Assembly (NCBI RefSeq): GCF_036588685.1
Contig: NC_086382.1
Span: forward strand, 21,266,001 to 21,330,000
Source: Mytilus trossulus
Lineage: Eukaryota
DNA length: 64,000 bases
Reading direction: 5' to 3'
Each line of letters opens with the position of its first letter. Position 1 is the stretch's first letter. Positions 2,290 through 50,530 of the stretch are shown one piece after another. Below the pieces are notes generated by a model. That model saw only the letters and a list, made by a program, of their open reading frames with translations, did not search any database and was not told the DNA's origin. The translations under genes and the position numbers were made by a program.

Positions 2290-4989
2290 ATCATTCAGAC
2301 TCATTATATACAACAGTCTTTTATATCTGCCGCGAGTTATTTTGGTTTGTGTTTATTGTGCACAAAAAGTAAACAATAAATTATTACACATATGAGATAT
2401 GAATTAAAGCCATTAAGCAGCATATCAATAAAAATCCGCACATAAAATATTTCACCAAAATCTAATAAGTTTTGTTTTCAGTCAAATTATAAATGTTTAT
2501 AATGCACTATTTTATGATTTTTTTTAATTATAAAGAGACGTCGGGTGAAACTGATTAATCAATAAGTCAAATAAAAGCTACTCAACAACCAACATGACCA
2601 CAAAATAACGATTAGACAAACAACAGTTACCAAATATGACGCATATAAAACAAAACAAAAATAGCAATACGTGACCTATAAAAACAGGAAGTGAACTCGG
2701 GCGCACTGAAAGTGTAAGCAGGTTCTGTTCCACTAAAGGCACCATCCTTGTTACGTTTTCAGATACGGAGATCTTCGAATTCGGAATTGTAACAATAGAC
2801 AAATCGATAAGTGACATGACAAAATCAAAATTATACCGATAATCAAAACAACAAAGGTGGTAGTAAAACACGTTCCCTGAAAATAAGCAAATTACATATG
2901 ACAAATGCAGAATACAAATTCTTACTTGTTTGACATATGTTTGGCGTTGACAACGACTGTACTTGAAGACTTCCCATAACCAGGGCCTTTGTGGACCAGA
3001 AACCTTCCACCATTTTTAGTAGTAGCTACAACTCCAGTATGTTTTATTCCAATTTTCCCTAGAAATCCGTTCAATGGTCTGGAAAAAAATGATTACATTA
3101 GTTTTACTGAAAATATACACAAGTCATATAACTACGTTAACAAATAGTCAATACATGGAGTTTATATTGAATAAAGAATCAGATTCAGTGTTGTATCTGT
3201 TACGATTCAACTTTCAGCAAATTGAATTACAAAGTATAAGGTTCAATCAATAAGTAATGCTCCAAACATGGCGTCCATAGATCGAAAAACATTTCTAAAT
3301 TTGTCCTTTGCCTCACGCATTTTTTTGTGTATCTAAACTCTGATATCATTCTCCGTAGAGCTACAAGTATATTGGTTGCTGTAAATTATCAAAACGTTGT
3401 TTTTGTGATCAAGGTTATCGTTATTTTAACATATCTATCATGAGCCAATGAGCAAGCACTGTCGACAAGGACGACCTGATGTAACTTTCAATGCTGCTGA
3501 AAAATGGCTGATCAATAGCAAGCATAATGTCGCAGGCATTGCAAATGAAACACATAGACCCGTCAGGCTTTTCTCCATTATTGAAGGTTGTACTATTGCC
3601 TGTAATATCCACTTCATTTGACCTTTCCGACTATGCAAGACCATCATTGATAGTCAAGGTCGTTTGAAAATTTTCCTCGTCTTTGATTTGACCTTTGATG
3701 GTTAATCGTCTGACTGGCAATAACATCTGATTTTCATATGCGATGAAGATAGATTCTAGCAACACATGACAATGGGTTTCGGTAATGACGTAGGTACTTC
3801 ATAAATACCGTATAGTAAAAAACAATCAAAACCTAGTTATAAGTATTTTAGTAGTACGATATAGACTTAAAAAAGGGTTGTTTTCTAAACAAGTTAACTA
3901 GTTTCATTCTGTTGTTTGGTATAATATGACAGTTACTACAAAAGGTATAATGTCCATTTCTTTGCTTAAATAGATGACATACCTTGAAACACTTTCAACT
4001 TTCGTAACTTTGCTGTTGTATAGATTTGTAAGACCTTTCTTGTTCATATCATGGGGGAGCTGTAAATAAAAATTCAATTTGAAGGAAAAATAATGAAAAC
4101 TCTTACATTGAATTGGTATTAAAAACACTTTCCGCCATGACAAAAAACAGTACGATATAGTTGAACTAAAAACTGGGTTTCAAGATGTTTTGTTTTCTGT
4201 TTATTTGACATGCATATGTATTTGCGCAGAGGAATAATATACCGTTTTTCGTGCGCGCGATAATGTCTCTGAGTTAATTCTAAACGGGAACTGTTGAAAC
4301 CTAAAAGTTTAATTACAAAAATACTTCGTTCGAAAGTTTTGAATCTAAAGTGCCTAAACAGAACGACCTGTCCAAAGTCAACCTGACTGAGGTTTTAGCA
4401 ATGAAGTACAGTTACTTAATTGAAAATGTACATGCATAGTACATCTTTTAAATAAAGCTTGTACTGAATCAGTAATTACTCTGTAGATATTCCCCCTGCA
4501 AACAGATATAACAGAATATCATTTTTGCAATAAACACCTTCAATATGTAAACTACTTGTAGTCAGTGTTAGACCCCTTGATAATTTTAATTGGGAGCAAT
4601 AATTGAACTCTTGAGGTAGTGATTTGTTTTGCCGATTATCTTATAAATTGGATAAAGATGCACACAAGAAATAACCTTTTCATAAGAAACAGACAAAATT
4701 CGGCTTTTGTGTTTCAAAAATAATTAAAACCACGACCGATGATAACCATTTTACTCTTTTACGTATAATAGTCATAGCGATAACAGGCCACGCAGGATAT
4801 TACATTTTGTAATTTACATAGATAGAATTTAGCTTCCATCATTCTAAAAATACATTGTGTCGCATTATTTACATTACTTACCCTTTTAACATTTGATCCT
4901 CCTGATCCACTAGATTTCTAAAAATAAGATTGTATTTGTTGTTAAAAACAGGAATAATGTTTTACGATGACGTTTTTTTTTATATAATT

Positions 4990-5216
4990 TTTGAAATACT
5001 AACTTAAAGGCTTTTCTATCTCATAGTTTACCTTAGCTATATTTGGCAAAACTATTAATAATATTTGGTCTCAAAATGAATGATCTTCAAATTTGTAACT
5101 TATCTGGCCTTCTTAATAATTTTTGATTGGAGTGTCGCTGATGAGTCTTTTGTAGACGAAACGCACGTCTGTCGCAAATATAATGTGTCAATCCTGTTAT
5201 CTATCATGAGTTTATT
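4990..5216 (+). mobile_element. Retrozyme-like repeat fragment carrying a hammerhead motif
   Basis: Same repeat recurs at 10037-10570 (+) and 17191-17476 (-). Confidence 0.75.
5132..5175 (+). ncRNA. Minimal type I hammerhead ribozyme motif
   Basis: GTGTCG-CTGATGA-GTC ttttgta GAC-GAAA-C gcac G-TC-TGTCGC: core intact, 3-bp stem II, minimal stem III, imperfect stem I. Confidence 0.75.
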
Positions 5217-6939
5217 GTTTAAGTATATGTTTTATAATAAAAAAAAAAAAGAATAACAAATATCGTTACATCCAGATTTACCTATCTATAGCTAGATATA
5301 GGGAATTGTTTGTTTGGACAGATTGTCTGCATGATAATGTAGTATACAGAGTTACTGTCACCTACCAAAACGAACATATATATTATCAAAAAATATTTGC
5401 CATAATCAATTCGTCAAGAACCATCAGATGCCTTTCACACACTTTTATTGTGGTGTTGTCTGCAGTATTAAATAAATTGATTATTGTGTACAGCAAGTTC
5501 TTTTCCCCTTTTACATCTTAATTTATACATACACTTTTATTACGACGGAAAAGCCATGCATCACTGATAGAAACCAGTATCAGAATAACTAAAATACTAC
5601 TGCAGCGCATGATAAGTTCCTGTGGCAAAATTTCTTTATTCTGAAAAATAAAAATAAAACATGACGAGAACAAAAAACATAATAGACGTTTATGTTTTGT
5701 ATCGTTTAATTGATATTTCTACTTTTTCAAAAGTATGATATGATTTTATATTTTTTACTAAATCTAACTTTATTGTTATCAAACTGAAGTCATTCTAAAG
5801 AAGTACATAGAAGAATAAAAATAATTTGAATCTTGAATTACAAGTTCTGGTAAGCAAAACTTAGAAAAATAATGCTAATCTGATTATAGAATTACATGTA
5901 TGCTTTATGTATATAATTATTTACATTAGATACAAATATGCAAATGATATGCATGTGTTATAACATCAAACTTACATTTATAGGTAAATACTCCTTATTC
6001 GATGTGAGCCTATCACTAAAAAAGATAATTTCCTTGTATATATACCTCTCAGAAAATAGGATAATTCAAAATGACTAAACCTATCCTTCTTTATTATTTA
6101 TGCTAATTTTGTATTCGAAATAATGACGTAAATATTGTTTTTAGAGATGAAAATTTATGACAACTGATTTCACAGGACATTGACTGGAACACCCTATACA
6201 TGTAATATATGTGACCACAAAGAATGTTTGCATGGAATAATAATAATATTGACTGTCTTTTTAGACGAGGTAAAATTCCACACGTTTAATTTGCAACGAA
6301 GTTATAAGTAAGCGTAATATATTTTATATTTTCTGTTTAAATCATGTAAACTGACTAAGTATATCAGCTAGGAAAGTTTAACATGTTGAATGGTATATCA
6401 TATGAAATTCATTTCTGCAAATTAGGGTTAGCTAGTTTTTGTTATCCCCTTTAGAAACGTTCAAATCCCTGTTTCTGTGGTGTCGTGGCAACATCGCCTA
6501 TATAGTCCCCGCGCCATATACCATTCGGTTTATTACTACAACAAAAAATATAGCCGAAAATATAGCCTTTGTTAATAGTCAAGTTATGCATTTTGTCGTC
6601 AGCTGTATCTAGGGCTATAACACAGAACATGCTGTATTGTAGCAAAGCTGGTATAGCCTTGCAGATCAACTGTTTTTGCAGTTTGTTAAGGATGATAGTA
6701 CTAACAATACAGTCACACTAATATTGTTTTATAATTGAAGACTAAATATGTGACAACTTTAGGACATATATTCACATCTTTCTGAGACATCGTGTCAACG
6801 ATTCTTGAACTATGCCCAGTGTCCTAGCCCAAACTATTGCTTTAGTAAAAAGTGCTGTTCAAAATTGAAAATAGTACATGTTAATAATTACATTACAAAA
6901 TGGTCATTGTAATTATATATGTATCAACTACTTGTAAGA

Positions 6940-7120: not shown

Positions 7121-7439
7121 CAGAATCCTCTAATTATTTTGGTGCACAGATCTTTATCATATATGATGAAGAATATAATTCTGAACCAACTAATGTAAGC
7201 CTTTTCACACTGAAACATTTGCTATAGAATTTAAGTAAGTTATGTTGCAAAGATTTATCTATTATATGATATCGCTTTACATCAGATTTACTACTATATT
7301 ATTGTATGCAATTTTTATAGACTAGTGTTAATTTTATTTATCTAATTGGATCCGATTCATGAGGTTGTCAATTTTCTCTAATGTAAACGTCTAGGTGTCT
7401 TTTGTTGTGATTTTCGTGATTATTATTTGTCATAAGCGA

Positions 7440-8395
7440 ACATCCCTAATTAACTGGGCTTTTAAAAAGTCAGAATGCGAGAACATATGTTCAAACTCTT
7501 TTAGGTAATTTTTTAGTAGCAATAAACAAAAGAACTATGTCAATTGGACATGCTTTGATACTATATATGCGCTTGAATTTTTACTTGATAACATCTTTGT
7601 TCGCTTTGGAGATTCCGTATATCGTCATGTTATTGGAAAACCAATGGGGACTAACTGTGCACCACTTATTGCGGACCTGTTTTTGTATTGTTATGAGTTA
7701 CAATTTATTACTAAAATTAGCAAAGACCCATCGAAACAACATTTGATACAAAAATTTAACAATACTTTCAGATATTTGGATGATATTTTGGCTCTAAATA
7801 ATGACGACTTCAGTATGTATACTAAAGAAATTTATCCTGTTGAACTTACTTTAAATAAAGCTAATACTAACAATGACCACTGCCCTTTCCTCGATCTTGA
7901 TATCTATATCACTAACGGAAAGCTTAATACTAAAATCTATGATAAAAGAGATGATTTTTAAATGGTGACGTTCCCTTGTCACCATGTTATGGTGTTAAAA
8001 TATCTCAACTTGTACGATTCGCTCGTGTTTGTAACAACGTATTAGATTTTAGCGAGAAAAATTTATGTATTACTGAAAAATTATTACACCAGGGTTTTCG
8101 ATATCACCAACTAGTCAAAACATTTACTAAATTTTATCATCGGTATAAGGAAATAATTCGTAAATATAACTCAACATGCAGACATCTTATACGTTCAGGT
8201 ATTTCACATCCAATAGTTTATGGTAATATTCTTTACAAAGCACAAAAATGTCAGCATTCACCTCAAAAGCTTACAAAACCTTTAAACAGACTTATAAAGA
8301 AGGGATATAGTTACGATACTGGTGTCAGGTCATTAAAGATTTCATATTTTGGCGTTAATATTGATTCACTTATAGGGTCTTTGCATCGGAACTAA
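7440..8395 (+). pseudogene. Penelope-like reverse transcriptase, disrupted
   Basis: Motifs G(K)PMGTNCAPLIADLFLY, FRYLDD, PFLDL, IYDKRDDF, YGV.ISQLVRFAR; a deletion/frameshift near 7960 splits ORFs 7644-7961 and 7976-8395. Confidence 0.85.
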
Positions 8396-8707
8396 ACACA
8401 TTTATTTAAAAAACAGTTGTTGGCATGACACGGGTTATGTTCTTCTCATATATTTTATGATAGTATGATACTAAACCCCTAACGGGAGGGATTGTGCCTG
8501 ATATTCATATAATGAAGACATAATCTTTCAATCAGTTTAATTGAGGTCTGGAGCTGGCATGTCAGTAAACTGCTAGTAGTCTGCTGTTATTTATGCATTA
8601 TTGTCATTTTATTTATTTTCTTTTGTTTCATCTTCTGACATCGGACTCGGACTTCTCTTGAACTGAATTTTAATGTGCGTATTGTTATGCGTTTACTTTT
8701 CTACATT

Positions 8708-8798
8708 GGCTAGAGGTATAGGGGGAGGGTTGAGATCTTATGAGCATGTTTAACCCCGCCGAAATTTTGCGCCTGTCCCAAGTCAGGAGCCTCTGGCC
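8708..8798 (+). ncRNA. Putative type-P5 (circularly permuted) twister ribozyme
   Basis: P5 GGCTAGAGGT(8708-17)/GCCTCTGGCC(8789-98); P2 GGGG(8721-24)/CCCC(8754-57); GAGGG 8725-29; U^AA 8751-53; GCC 8758-60; P4 CCTG/CAGG enclosing TCCCAAGT. Confidence 0.8.
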
Positions 8799-9779
8799 TT
8801 TGTTAGTCTTGTATGATTGTTAATTTTAGTTTCTTGTGTATAGTTCGGAGTTTAGTATGACGTCCATTATCACTGTACTAGTATACATATTTTTTAAGAG
8901 GCCAGCTGAAGGACGCCTACGGGTACGGGAGTTTCTCGCTACATTGAAGACCCATTGGTGGCCTTCGTTTATGTTGTCTGCTCTATGGTCGGGTTGTCGC
9001 TTTGACACATTCCCCATTTCCTTTCTCAATTTTATTGTGTTATATAAATCTTCAATTCATAGTAAACGAATCAAATCCCAGGTAATTTGTTTATATAAGT
9101 ATATTGAAAAGAAAGAACCTTCCTCTTCAAAACAATGTGCATTACAACAAAGGATCAAAATGTCCATATACATTCATACATTCTACAAACAGGTAAATAG
9201 AAAAGGACCACCACATTTGTTAAATTATGTGGTAGCCAAGCAAAACATCATCGTATGTATGATGGAGTGATTGATGGATATTACATGTTATTATTATATG
9301 ATTAATGATATATCTTGATTTGTTTTGTTACTTTTTTTGCAACAGCTCACCTTGTTTCAACCTCAAACAGTATTTTAATGAACGTTCATATTACATAATA
9401 TGATATAATTGCGCATGTTTACATGTCAGTATGCAGGTTTATCCCTGAATGACTTTTGGATTTCCCGAAATTGATTTGGAAAAATGTTAGTTAAGAGGCA
9501 GATGTTTTTTATCCGAAACTCCTGCTATACCACTAACTGAAATACAATTGAATAATCACAGATGCTATCGTATCAGTTAGTTTCTTTTAGCTTTTATAAT
9601 TCTAAAGACTTTTGGGATTTTCTTTTGCTAAAAAATTGACTTATTAACTTTTAATTAGAACCAGGGTACTCACCCAGGATTATTTCTTTCTAAAGAACAT
9701 TTAGGTTTTGGTTGTTGTTTTCATTTCATTTCATCTCTCGTTCAAAAGGCTGAATTCAAAATTGATTTCCAGTGTTTCC

Positions 9780-33597: not shown

Positions 33598-33850
33598 TCT
33601 GTTTTGTTCACGCATCGTTGTAAAAATAACGGAATTTGATGCGACTGTCATAAAAGTGAGAGGTTTCGCGCTATAAAATCAGGTTCAATACACCATTTTC
33701 TACATTTGAAAATGCCTGTACCAAGTCAGGAATATGACAGTTGTTGTCTATTCGTTTGATGTGTTTTATCCTTTGATTTTGCCATTTGATGAGGGACTTT
33801 CCGTTTGGAATTTTCCTCGGAGTTCAGTATTTTTGTGATTTTACTTTTCA
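33598..33850 (+). mobile_element. ~250-bp non-coding interspersed repeat carrying a twister fold
   Basis: 3' half repeated at 34520-34657 (+); degenerate copy at 44115-44365 (-). Confidence 0.75.
33642..33743 (+). ncRNA. Putative type-P5 twister ribozyme (second family)
   Basis: P5 CGACTGTCATA/TATGACAGTTG; GAGGT 33660-64; C^AA 33686-88; ACC 33692-94; P3 ATTTTC/GAAAAT; P4 CCTG/CAGG enclosing TACCAAGT; P2 imperfect. Confidence 0.72.
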
Positions 33851-35021
33851 CTTGCTGGGTAAAAAATCGAAAAATGATTGAAACCTTTCTGACATTAAAT
33901 GGGCTTAATCTTTCGAAAAACTAAATAGTTCTACTCCAGGAATAGATGATCTAAGCTGTAAAGTATCTTGAATCCTCTAATAGTTCGTACTTTATTTCGC
34001 CCTTTTCACTTGATGAAAGACATTCCAAACTAGGATGAATTGATTAGTTTTAAAAAGTCAAAAGAACTTTTGCGTCTAGTTTTTTCAACATAAACTTTGT
34101 TATGATCTATAGAAAATTCATTGCAGGAATATAGAATTTGGTAACATATTATATATATATATACGTAATTTTGTTGGAATATCATAGCGCACGTACATGT
34201 GTATCTTGCGATGCTGTGACATTTTGAAAAGATTGCAGATGATTTTTTTAAAAGCATTAGGCGAAATAAAAAGAGTAGGTTGGCCGGGCCTCTTTGTTAA
34301 AGTCTAAGGTTATATAAGATTTATTTAAGTTTTGTTTCTTGTCCTTTCAATGTGTTATTTAAGTGTTTAATTAGGTACAATTCAATTTTGATAGTTTTCT
34401 ATACTTCCTAAAGTTGTAACATTGTTCTGGCTCATAGCGACTTTCTCATTTATCAGTTGTGCTTCGTGGCAAACAGGCAATCGTTGGATTACCCGACTTT
34501 TAAATCGCATGAATATGTTCTACATAGGAAAATGCCTGTACCAAGTCAGGAATATGACAGTTGTTATTCATTCGTTCGATTCGTTTTAGCTTTTGGTTTT
34601 ACATTTGACTGTCCGTTTTGAACTTCCTCGGAGTTCATCATTTTTGTGATTTTACTACACTATTTCTATGAACGTAACACTTAAATTCACAATGCACAGA
34701 ACCTTCATGAGTGACCAAACATAAGTTTCTGTTATAGATAATTATAATGCACATTTTAAGTATTTTTTTTGTCGTAGAACACACCGAGGGGTGTCAGGAT
34801 TGATCAAATGAAAGACCGACCGTATGGATATACTGACACCACGATATCATTTTCCTTACACTTGTGATTCACCATTAACTAGACCTAAGTACACATGAAA
34901 ACATTGTTGACGACAATACCGCCAACGCCGGAAACAATATAGCGATTTCTCGCTTTGTTTAAATCAAATATCAATGATAAGAAAAACAGGTAACCAGGAA
35001 GGATCAAGTCCAATTTTAAAA

Positions 35022-43739: not shown

Positions 43740-45359
43740 CATTGGTTGAGAAAGCCGGAGGTCAATAAACTTGTGAAAGCGTCCGTAAAATGTTCGATGG
43801 GGTGATATTTTAACTCCCTCAGGCAGAGTTGGTCTCAAAAGGATTTACATGCTTCATCAGTTTAATATTATTTAGCTCTTTAGCTGTTTCGGTTCTTATT
43901 CGTCCTTGGCTTTCAAATATTCGGCATTGAGCATTCCGTATGGAGGTAAAGCCAGGTAATCGTTTCAGACGCATGCAATTTATAACGCGTTATTTCATTT
44001 TTTTTTCAACTACACTACCTTGAACTCATAGTTTATTAGAGTCCATGTAACCAGAAACCCTCTATCAAGGAAATTAAGATAGGAAAATGCAATCTCAACT
44101 GGAACATATATAAAATAGAATTACAAAAAAAAAACGAACTCCAAGGCAAATTCAAACTGGAAAGACTTTTATCAAATGGCAAAATCAAAAACTGAAGCAC
44201 ATCAAACAAAGGGAAACGGATATCATATTTCTGCCTTAGTATAGGCATTTCTTAATGTGAAAATGTTAGATTAAACCTGGTCTTATAGCTAGCTTAAATT
44301 CTCGCATGTATGATAGTCGCGTATAATTCTATTTTATTGAGAACAATGTGTGAGCACAACAACAAAAAAAGTCAAATTTTGTTTTTGTTTGTAAAGTTTG
44401 TTTTAAATAAAGGAAAAAATTGGCAAGAAGAGGAGCACTGTTGGTTCCTATGGGAAATGTCGATTGGTTGTTGAAAAATTCGTTCGTCATTCAAAAGAAA
44501 CAAATATTCAAATTATCATTTTATGTATGTCCACAAATATATTTGACAAGTGTGATTGTAAAACAACGGTATAATTAAGCGTGAATCATCATGCAGTTTT
44601 TATTCAAATGATTTGTTGGTCATGATTTTAGACAGTATTGTCAATGACTAAGCTTAATTTGAAAAAAATCAACAATACTGGCTGTTAAAAACGAATTGTT
44701 ATTTTACTATTTCACCTTCATTCAAGAGGCACTAGCTACGAGATATATAACAAAATCTGAAGTAAGATTTTTTTTTCTGTTCAATCGATAATGAAAGTGA
44801 AATAGTGAAATAATAATTCGCTTTTAGCAGTCAGAATGGTTCAATTTTGTCAAATTAAGCGAAGAAACATTGATAATTACTTATTCACTTGCAAGTGAAT
44901 AACTCGACCTCATTAAATCCGTATTCATGTGAACTTCACTTTAACCCTAGCTACAGATTAACAACGCATACATTGTACTGTACTGGTTATTTAAAGAAAA
45001 AGAATGTCAACAATGAAAAGGAAACTACGGTAAATCATTTGATTACTGGTTCGATCCATATAAAATCATTCTTATATGTTTTAAAACAAAGAGAAGCATA
45101 TATTTTTAATCTTTAAAAATAAAATCAAACAGACCTATAAAAATCCAATGAGGGACATTGGTGAAGATTATCCCCACTTAATTACAGATGGCGCTGTGGT
45201 AGATCAGGTCCAACCACATCTGTTGTATGATAAGAAAGCCAGCATGCATTCATTGATACTATATACAAACATTTTTATACTGATAATTTAGATATTATAA
45301 ATTCCTTTGGTTCATTATTATTTATTATAAACTGTTTAATAGTCAATTTCACTACCAAT

Positions 45360-49832: not shown

Positions 49833-50530
49833 AATAAAATTGAGAATGGAAACGGGGAACGTGTCAAAGAGACCGTAACCAGACAAAGACCAGATGAAGG
49901 TCACCAATGCAATGGGGTTTTAATACAACGAGATCCCGCACCCAGAGTCGTGCGTCCGTTGGCCAATTAACAAAATTGTGTACTAGTTTGGTGAAAATGG
50001 AAGTCATACTTAACTTCGAAATATATAAATGAACTAAAATTCAAAATCATACAAGACTCACAAAGGCCAGAGGCTCCTTGTATTAAACAGGTGCAAAAAA
50101 TGCGGCGGTGTTAAACAAAATTTTGAGATATCAACGCTACCCAATACCTCTAGCCAATGTAAAAAAAAATACACATCAACACGCACAATAAAACTCAGTT
50201 CAAAAGAAGTCCGAGTCCGATGTCAGAATAGGTAACAAAGGAAACATCTCGCTACATTGAAGACCTGTTGGTGACCTTCTGCTGTTGTTTTTTTATTTGG
50301 TCGGGTTGTTGTCTCTTTGACACATTCCCCATTTCCATTTTCAATTTTATTTACTTATTATATATAAATGACAATGATACATAAATTAAGAAGGATTACT
50401 AACAGTTACTAACATGCATGCCAGCTCCATCTCAATTAAACTGCTTGAAAGATTATTTCTTCATCATATGAATATGAATATCATGCACAATCATTTCCAT
50501 TAGGGGTTAAGTATCATACGATCATGAAAT
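49833..50530 (-). repeat. Penelope-like 3' region copy with a decayed twister (50065-50155), interrupted by an inverted fragment of the same family at 50246-50352
   Basis: Reverse complement matches ~8455-9035. Confidence 0.8.

Follow-up and report, generated by a model that had tools for sequence, protein, structure and literature searches.

Here we describe a fossil copy of a twister-class RNA in the 3' UTR of a Naiad-type Penelope-like element, lying on the forward strand at positions 8708-8798 of the window—the whole 64,000-nucleotide stretch of DNA that we analyzed. Judged from its sequence, the copy belongs to a conserved fold of the twister class, in the permutation that is open at P5. 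Live copies of the element most likely self-cleave, probably as a dimer, and would in this way process tandem or read-through transcripts; we give this reading a probability of roughly 70%. The fold, together with its conservation, covariation, and linkage to the reverse transcriptase (RT) gene, was computed here; cleavage, dimerization, and role are what we infer.

When positions 8500-9200 are read base by base, all of the core pieces that an earlier sequence-only reading had listed are found in place on the forward strand. P5 encloses the chain ends and leaves the P1 region internal, which is the arrangement that characterizes type-P5 twisters; its 5' strand (8708-8717) is the complement of its 3' strand (8789-8798) over 10 pairs, of which two are G.U. 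Next comes the 3' strand of P2 (GGGG, 8721-8724), paired with CCCC at 8754-8757, and then GAGGG (8725-8729), which holds the putative general base G8725 and, at 8727-8729, one strand of pseudoknot T1. A spacer with two self-complementary tracts (8730-8750) replaces P1, and it leads to the predicted cleavage site, U8751/A8752, followed by A8753 (8751-8753 in all); this site was placed from the twister consensus. The 5' strand of P2 (8754-8757) runs into the T2 strand GC (8758-8759), and the GCC of the consensus occupies 8758-8760, with C8760 opening the P3 hairpin (8760-8771). Finally, P4 (CCUG at 8772-8775 with CAGG at 8784-8787) closes an 8-nt loop, UCCCAAGU (8776-8783), that carries the partners of both T1 and T2.

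The consensus used for comparison was the Rfam twister-P1 consensus, taken from cmscan matches elsewhere in the same genome. Against it, the sole core departure of the window motif is a C to U change at the last loop base, because of which one pseudoknot pair of this copy is G.U; the three-pair pseudoknot T1 is GGG/CCC, and the loop matches the general form N-CCC-A-A-G-N of 8 nt. Twisters belong to a class reportedly defined by Roth et al. in 2014, and seven of its nine defining features are present here, the two departures being P1 and the Rfam model score. The G that follows P2' acts as general base in twister and A1 as general acid (PMC11662667); in the window copy these positions are G8725 and A8752. 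It has also been found that P1 is dispensable for catalysis and that G.U is tolerated in the two-pair pseudoknot (PMC11662667, PMC6154101). P3 had been called degenerate in this copy and intact elsewhere, and so it proves: a C-to-A change breaks the helix here, and young copies have a 4-bp hairpin. The description of P1 as weak was correct in that we found no credible helix, but it missed the systematic replacement of P1 by two palindromic tracts. One other candidate in the neighborhood, a hammerhead reading of the downstream CUGAAGG (~8907), was ruled out by core requirements that the sequence lacks.

The closest known relative is the type-P5 twister (RF02684), with which the motif shares the order of its parts—P5, P2', GAGGG, the P1 region, N^AA, P2, GC, P3, P4 with a NCCCAAGN loop, and P5'—as well as the same two pseudoknots and the same positions of the catalytic A and G. 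The two differ in several ways: P1 is represented here by two palindromic tracts, the RF02684 model gives no score, several clades have GAGGU, GAGGA, or GAAGG with matching changes in the loop, and the setting is the UTR of a eukaryotic retroelement.

The identity of this retroelement agrees with the lineage that the sequence-only reading had suggested: it is a Penelope-like element of the Naiad type, with an upstream GIY-YIG-like domain, DKA, CxC, and no C-terminal endonuclease. Naiads are described as having DKA in place of DKG, an upstream CxC motif, and an N-terminal GIY-YIG domain with none at the C-terminus (PMC8557442). The window holds a 5'-truncated, decayed copy at 7445-9036 (+), with ~89% identity to young copies and a sharp 3' end near 9036; homology to genomic copies begins at 7440-7445 and ends at 9034-9036. 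What is left of the RT ORF is its C-terminal half, at 7644-7961 and 7976-8395 (+), with the motifs PMGTNCAP and RYLDDIL and a stop codon at 8393-8395. With its 5' truncation and broken ORF, this copy is a dead fossil. Its 3' UTR includes a SECIS-like hairpin at approximately 8447-8511 (+), which matches positions 5989-6053 of the young copy L055, and the 3' tail of the element follows the motif at 8799-9036 (+), so that the predicted cut would release 285 nt (8752-9036).

The repeat that carries the motif has hundreds of genomic copies that are 94-97% identical to the window copy; they share the sharp 3' end (window 9034-9036) and have scattered 5' truncation points. A full unit measures ~4.0 kb, as seen from 99%-identical copies 4,021 bp apart on one contig. 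The young copy L055 has an intact 435-aa RT ORF at 4630-5937, with PKLHK, PMGTNCAP, and RYLDDIL, that ends after the RT thumb; upstream in the RT frame are ADKA, a TGA exactly eight codons after DKA, and the CxC motif, here CNC. In its endonuclease region, TGA codons at 7204 and 7237 (7204-7239) flank the GIY strand, and the in-frame translation upstream of the RT shows the GIY-YIG-like pattern YVGET...R...EH...N; on the piece that follows the UGA, the Pfam GIY-YIG model scores no higher than 15.3 bits (E 0.025), and a 269-aa N-terminal ORF matches nothing in Pfam or the protein atlas. The SECIS_1 model scores L055:5989-6053, which lies 52 nt after the stop codon, at 30.4 bits (E 6e-4), below its gathering score of 35. 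Selenoprotein-encoding Naiads of clams have in-frame UGA codons eight residues after DKA and before the GIY-YIG motif, and a SECIS just after the stop codon (PMC8557442); the element described here likewise has in-frame TGAs and a SECIS-like hairpin. The same paper reports Naiads as being without canonical hammerheads, and twister is unmentioned in it (PMC8557442).

Existing covariance models do not recognize the motif. The sequence-only reading had looked to the Rfam twister models for a match on this segment, but these returned none, either at the gathering threshold in the 64-kb window or at E<=10 on 301 nt; the same models found nothing in 20 genomic copies and the young master copy, and no Rfam family of any kind reached its gathering score in the 64-kb window. 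Searched genome-wide, RF02684 reached at best 24.9 bits, at unrelated places, and the twister-sister model gave nothing relevant. This silence is a property of the motif and not of the tool, because the same genome contains canonical type-P1 twisters (RF03160) whose best score is 73 bits and which have a normal P1 as well as covariation in P2 and P3. These type-P1 twisters occur at L059:1501-1561, at L061:1501-1560, and at about 60 other genomic places, in several repeat families.

The lack of an Rfam match could be taken to mean that the twister likeness is a chance feature of one repeat family, spread by transposition. Agreement within that family is uninformative on this point because its copies are 85-99% identical, and we therefore searched unrelated contigs: a sample of 80 marine-metagenome contigs that encode Naiad-like RTs at 38-99% identity, found with an RT-relative alignment. 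A strict descriptor, applied after a hairpin scan, gave 27 sense-strand matches in the 80 contigs and none antisense. An initial regular-expression descriptor missed L136, L073, L074, and L081 and produced false parses at window 33584 and at L115 1807, which were settled by a covariance model. This model, R1, was built from 19 representatives with only P2 and P4 marked as pairs; it identified the motif in 35 of the 80 contigs (42-99% RT identity) at E < 0.01, all on the RT sense strand, with no credible antisense match.

The motif flanks the RT gene, in most cases on its downstream side. Where RT identity is 52% or higher and the contig extends far enough downstream, the motif is present in all but L087; the more distant clades are mixed, with the motif found in L115, L119, L121, L126, L128, and L136 and absent from others even with filters off. 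Eight contigs have at least 900 nt after the RT match and no motif; seven belong to clades whose RT identity is 47% or less, and a filters-off search of seven of these eight contigs found nothing. On the RT tree, motif-bearing contigs are spread over most deep lineages. One contig, L078, has motifs at 1-83 and 4181-4264, which are 4,180 nt apart and flank the ORF, and two others have a motif upstream of the RT (L099:418-501 and L126:622-703). The placement in these three contigs is the pseudo-LTR layout, that is, the hammerhead position of canonical Penelope-like elements.

On the window motif itself R1 scores 67 bits (8718-8789), and in the genome of the window all 150 scored candidates fall between 62 and 80 bits. 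The window contains further members of the class. The same fold occurs in a second Naiad family at 33653-33732 (+; R1 52.6 bits), where the loop UACCAAGU pairs with GAGGU; the R1 score and this ACC:GGU compensation confirm the site. A motif cut to its P4 half lies in another Naiad family at 34501-34552 (+), and a decayed copy of the motif class at 44228-44308 (-) scores 17.3 bits (E 0.044). The old, diverged tail copy at 49835-50244 (-), which is 75% identical, contains a motif at 50065-50155 in which P5 and P3 survive and the catalytic core is eroded; R1 found no match in 49835-50244. This tail adjoins another at 50247-50349 (+), two 5'-truncated tails thus lying head to head, and the pair at 49835-50349 is the inverted arrangement that has been described for Penelope-like insertions.

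Compensatory changes are found in all six structural elements—P2, P3, P4, P5, T1, and T2. In alignment A3, where P2, P4, T1, and T2 were marked, 89.5% of cells are paired versus 75.4% after shuffling, and the covariation score of 0.374 (versus 0.118) was exceeded in none of 500 shuffles; two rows of A3 are misaligned, the effect of which is only to lower the counts. Alignment A5, made with R1 and containing 35 distinct rows, gave similar figures: 86.7% of cells paired versus 71.5% shuffled, and a score of 0.365 versus 0.121, again exceeded in 0/500 shuffles. Slid controls on A5 reached at most 52% paired cells and a score of at most 0.069. The MAFFT alignments A2 and A4, with one clade one column out of register, were left out. 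The covariation of T1 and T2 is an independent test because the pseudoknots are absent from R1. The proposal of a twister fold opened at P5 is thus borne out on two sides: P2, P4, T1, and T2 covary in 35 distinct sequences, and the P3 and P5 helices differ in sequence between families.

The individual helices vary in the following ways. The closing pair of P2 occurs as UA, GC, AU, CG, and UG, and one large clade has a conserved internal P2 mismatch that is repaired in L116 and L103. In T1 the compensations are GAGGG:CCC, GAAGG:CCU, GAAGA:UCU, GAGGA:UCC, and GAGGU:ACC, with GC changing to AU and to UA at two of the three pairs; the third position is a non-pair in 11 of 33 rows, being U.U in the clade with the P2 mismatch. 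T2 shows the pair types CG (13), GU (6), AU (4), GC (1), and UG (1), and the strand combinations GC:GC, AC:GU, CC:GG, and UC:GG, into which the GC:GU of the window family fits. P4 is paired in 97-100% of cells and has two pairs changed on both sides, while P3 and P5 have their own complementary sequence in each family, P5 ranging from 6 to 21 pairs. Almost every aligned row retains NAA, A1, A2, and loop A6, and every complete row has the G after P2'. Chance is excluded in practice because there are hundreds of copies and because the architecture recurs with compensatory changes in unrelated contigs; one repeat family could hardly have produced the same architecture with different helix sequences in dozens of such contigs, always on the RT sense strand, together with compensatory changes in six structural elements. 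We consider this explanation scarcely credible.

The alignments also bear on a different pairing (GGKU/AMCC), between the G-rich strand that follows P2' and a segment made up of A1, A2, and the first bases of P2. If this nested helix were the functional structure, the twister likeness would be secondary. RNAalifold, run without pseudoknots, prefers it on A3 (columns 10-13 with 39-42; window 8727-8730 with 8753-8756), one of its positions shows the pair types GC, UA, and UG, and it is used in the single-sequence minimum free energy (MFE) structure of the window copy. However, the helix fails in several families where the twister P2 pair holds, it accounts for neither the conserved P4 loop nor the T1 and T2 compensations, and the window copy has an MFE z-score of just -1.9. 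We regard it as improbable that this is the functional fold; it may instead be an inactive conformer, or off-state, of the same ribozyme.

The P1 region sets the motif apart. A P1 helix in cis was sought by hand and by folding, and no conserved helix was found that joins the strand following GAGGN to the one preceding NAA. In its place every family has two covarying self-complementary tracts—perfect palindromes of 6-12 nt whose sequences differ. The first tract is 6-12 nt long and begins one or two positions beyond GAGGN (for example, GAGAUCUC, GGGAUCCC, GAGCGCUC, GGUGCACC, GGGGCCCC, GCAGCUGC, and GGCAUGCC); the second ends at the predicted cut site (AAACAUGUUU, AACUAGUU, AACCGGUU, and AAACGUUU). 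In the window these are Pal1 (8731-8740, +) and Pal2 (~8741-8752, +), both with G.U in this decayed copy. The central bases of the palindromes are always self-complementary, which a hairpin would not need. Folding gives the spacer monomer 0 to -3 kcal/mol; the spacer homodimer is predicted at -13 to -23 kcal/mol, versus about -5 to -8 for shuffled sequences. Two near-identical elements, L073:4164-4236 and L074:2121-2193, have GGGCCC and GGAUCC, respectively, as first palindrome, a symmetric central double change that keeps self-complementarity. One genomic copy (L032, at ~1204 on the minus strand of the locus) has its two tracts separated by a 43-nt insertion within the palindromic spacer.

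In Penelope hammerheads, a palindromic loop stands at the expected closing point of stem III, and these ribozymes are considered to function as dimers (PMC6765202). It is because the palindromes resemble those of the dimeric Penelope hammerheads that we infer dimer-dependent action, by analogy: the active form would be a dimer of two motifs. One caveat is geometric—with a 2-nt linker, a simple antiparallel dimer cannot have the two palindromes paired at once. A stronger version of the idea is that Naiads carry a dimerization-dependent twister, in which palindromes replace P1 and two motifs, supplied by tandem copies or by separate transcripts, would have to pair before either cuts, convergent with the dimeric Penelope hammerheads; we offer this version tentatively, with somewhat less than even confidence.

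Under the self-cleaving reading, transcripts of live copies would fold into P2, P3, P4, and P5 plus the pseudoknots T1 and T2, two motifs would dimerize through the palindromic tracts, and the RNA would cut itself between N-1 and A1 (U8751/A8752 in the window), so that the upstream product would end in a 2',3'-cyclic phosphate and the 285-nt tail would begin with a 5'-OH. A partial-tandem layout would put a motif on both sides of the ORF, in the hammerhead slot of canonical Penelope-like elements, and cutting would serve the processing of tandem or read-through transcripts. The sequence-only reading had suggested that the ribozyme may define the RNA ends of the element, but the DNA copies lend this no support: in a sample biased to motif-bearing copies, 0 of 55 copies with an intact 3' end begin within 5 nt of the cut site. 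Among these copies, any cleaved RNA thus leaves no visible mark. In addition, efficient cleavage would sever the ORF from the 3' end where copies terminate.

These observations on copy ends could also be explained by a twister-derived fold that no longer cuts and is kept as a structural 3'-UTR module, such as a site of RT recognition, dimerization, or RNA packaging. Such a module would have no cleavage footprint in the copy ends, and it would keep the ORF connected to the 3' end that insertion uses. The missing P1, the one clade with weakened P2 and T1, and the silent Rfam models point the same way, and the palindromes alone would suit RNA dimerization. However, RT lineages that are 42-55% identical retain the residues needed only for chemistry, with A1 and A2 in almost every row and the G in every complete one; the scaffold of the active site (T1, T2, and loop A6) is also kept, not all of which a purely structural role needs; and cleavage is known from natural twisters whose P1 and P2 are imperfect (PMC11662667, PMC8501958). 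We therefore judge the non-cutting module to be unlikely and continue to favor self-cleavage in live copies.

Three known systems help to place the motif. The type-P1 twisters of the same genome (RF03160) have a core that is nearly letter-identical—UAA, GCC, a UCCCAAGC loop, and GAGGG—and are also highly repeated; they differ in being opened at P1, with a normal 5-bp P1 and a length of ~60 nt, and they belong to other repeat families with unrelated flanks and no adjacent RT gene seen in 3-kb loci. The hammerheads of canonical Penelope-like elements are said to have been described by Cervera and de la Pena in 2014 and by Lunse et al. in 2017. Their ribozyme class differs from that of the Naiad motif, but like it they lie in the 3' part of the element from which the pseudo-LTR arises, and they too have a palindromic tract where the closing helix should be; dimer action and a role in processing tandem transcripts have been proposed for these hammerheads (PMC6765202). 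Finally, the Schistosoma element Perere-3 carries T-variant twisters at its 5' end, with the cut site coinciding with the boundary of the element (PMC8501958). Like the Naiad motif, these variants have a relaxed or absent P1, are integral to a retrotransposon, and allow any base at N-1; in contrast, they are type P1 and lie at the 5' end of a LINE-like element, whereas the Naiad motif lies in a Penelope-like 3' UTR, and the ends of copies do not coincide with the cut site.

A large survey of natural twisters was confined to type-P1 forms. The combination of twister and Penelope-like element had been suspected to be undescribed, and a literature search found no paper with both 'Naiad' and 'twister'. 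Twisters inside retrotransposons are thus already known, as are ribozymes of Penelope-like elements, the latter being hammerheads; what is new, on the sequence assignment made here, is a twister with an altered P1 in a new host and position, the 3' UTR of Naiads.

Naiads dominate the genomes of bivalves and other invertebrates. In 2021 they were reportedly singled out as a clade of Penelope-like elements that proliferates without a hammerhead, and the ribozyme was read as a possibly dispensable passenger. If true, a conserved twister in the hammerhead position would turn this view around: it would suggest that the whole Penelope-like class needs some self-cleaving RNA in its pseudo-LTR, and that the kind of ribozyme in the slot is interchangeable. 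Known natural twisters would moreover gain an architecture that escapes current covariance models, and rough first-look counts suggest that it is present in very many copies in one genome. The exchange of P1 for palindromes amounts to a directly testable concentration- or tandem-dependent twister—and, should the dimer reading be true, a pseudo-LTR ribozyme would be a general requirement of Penelope-like retrotransposition.
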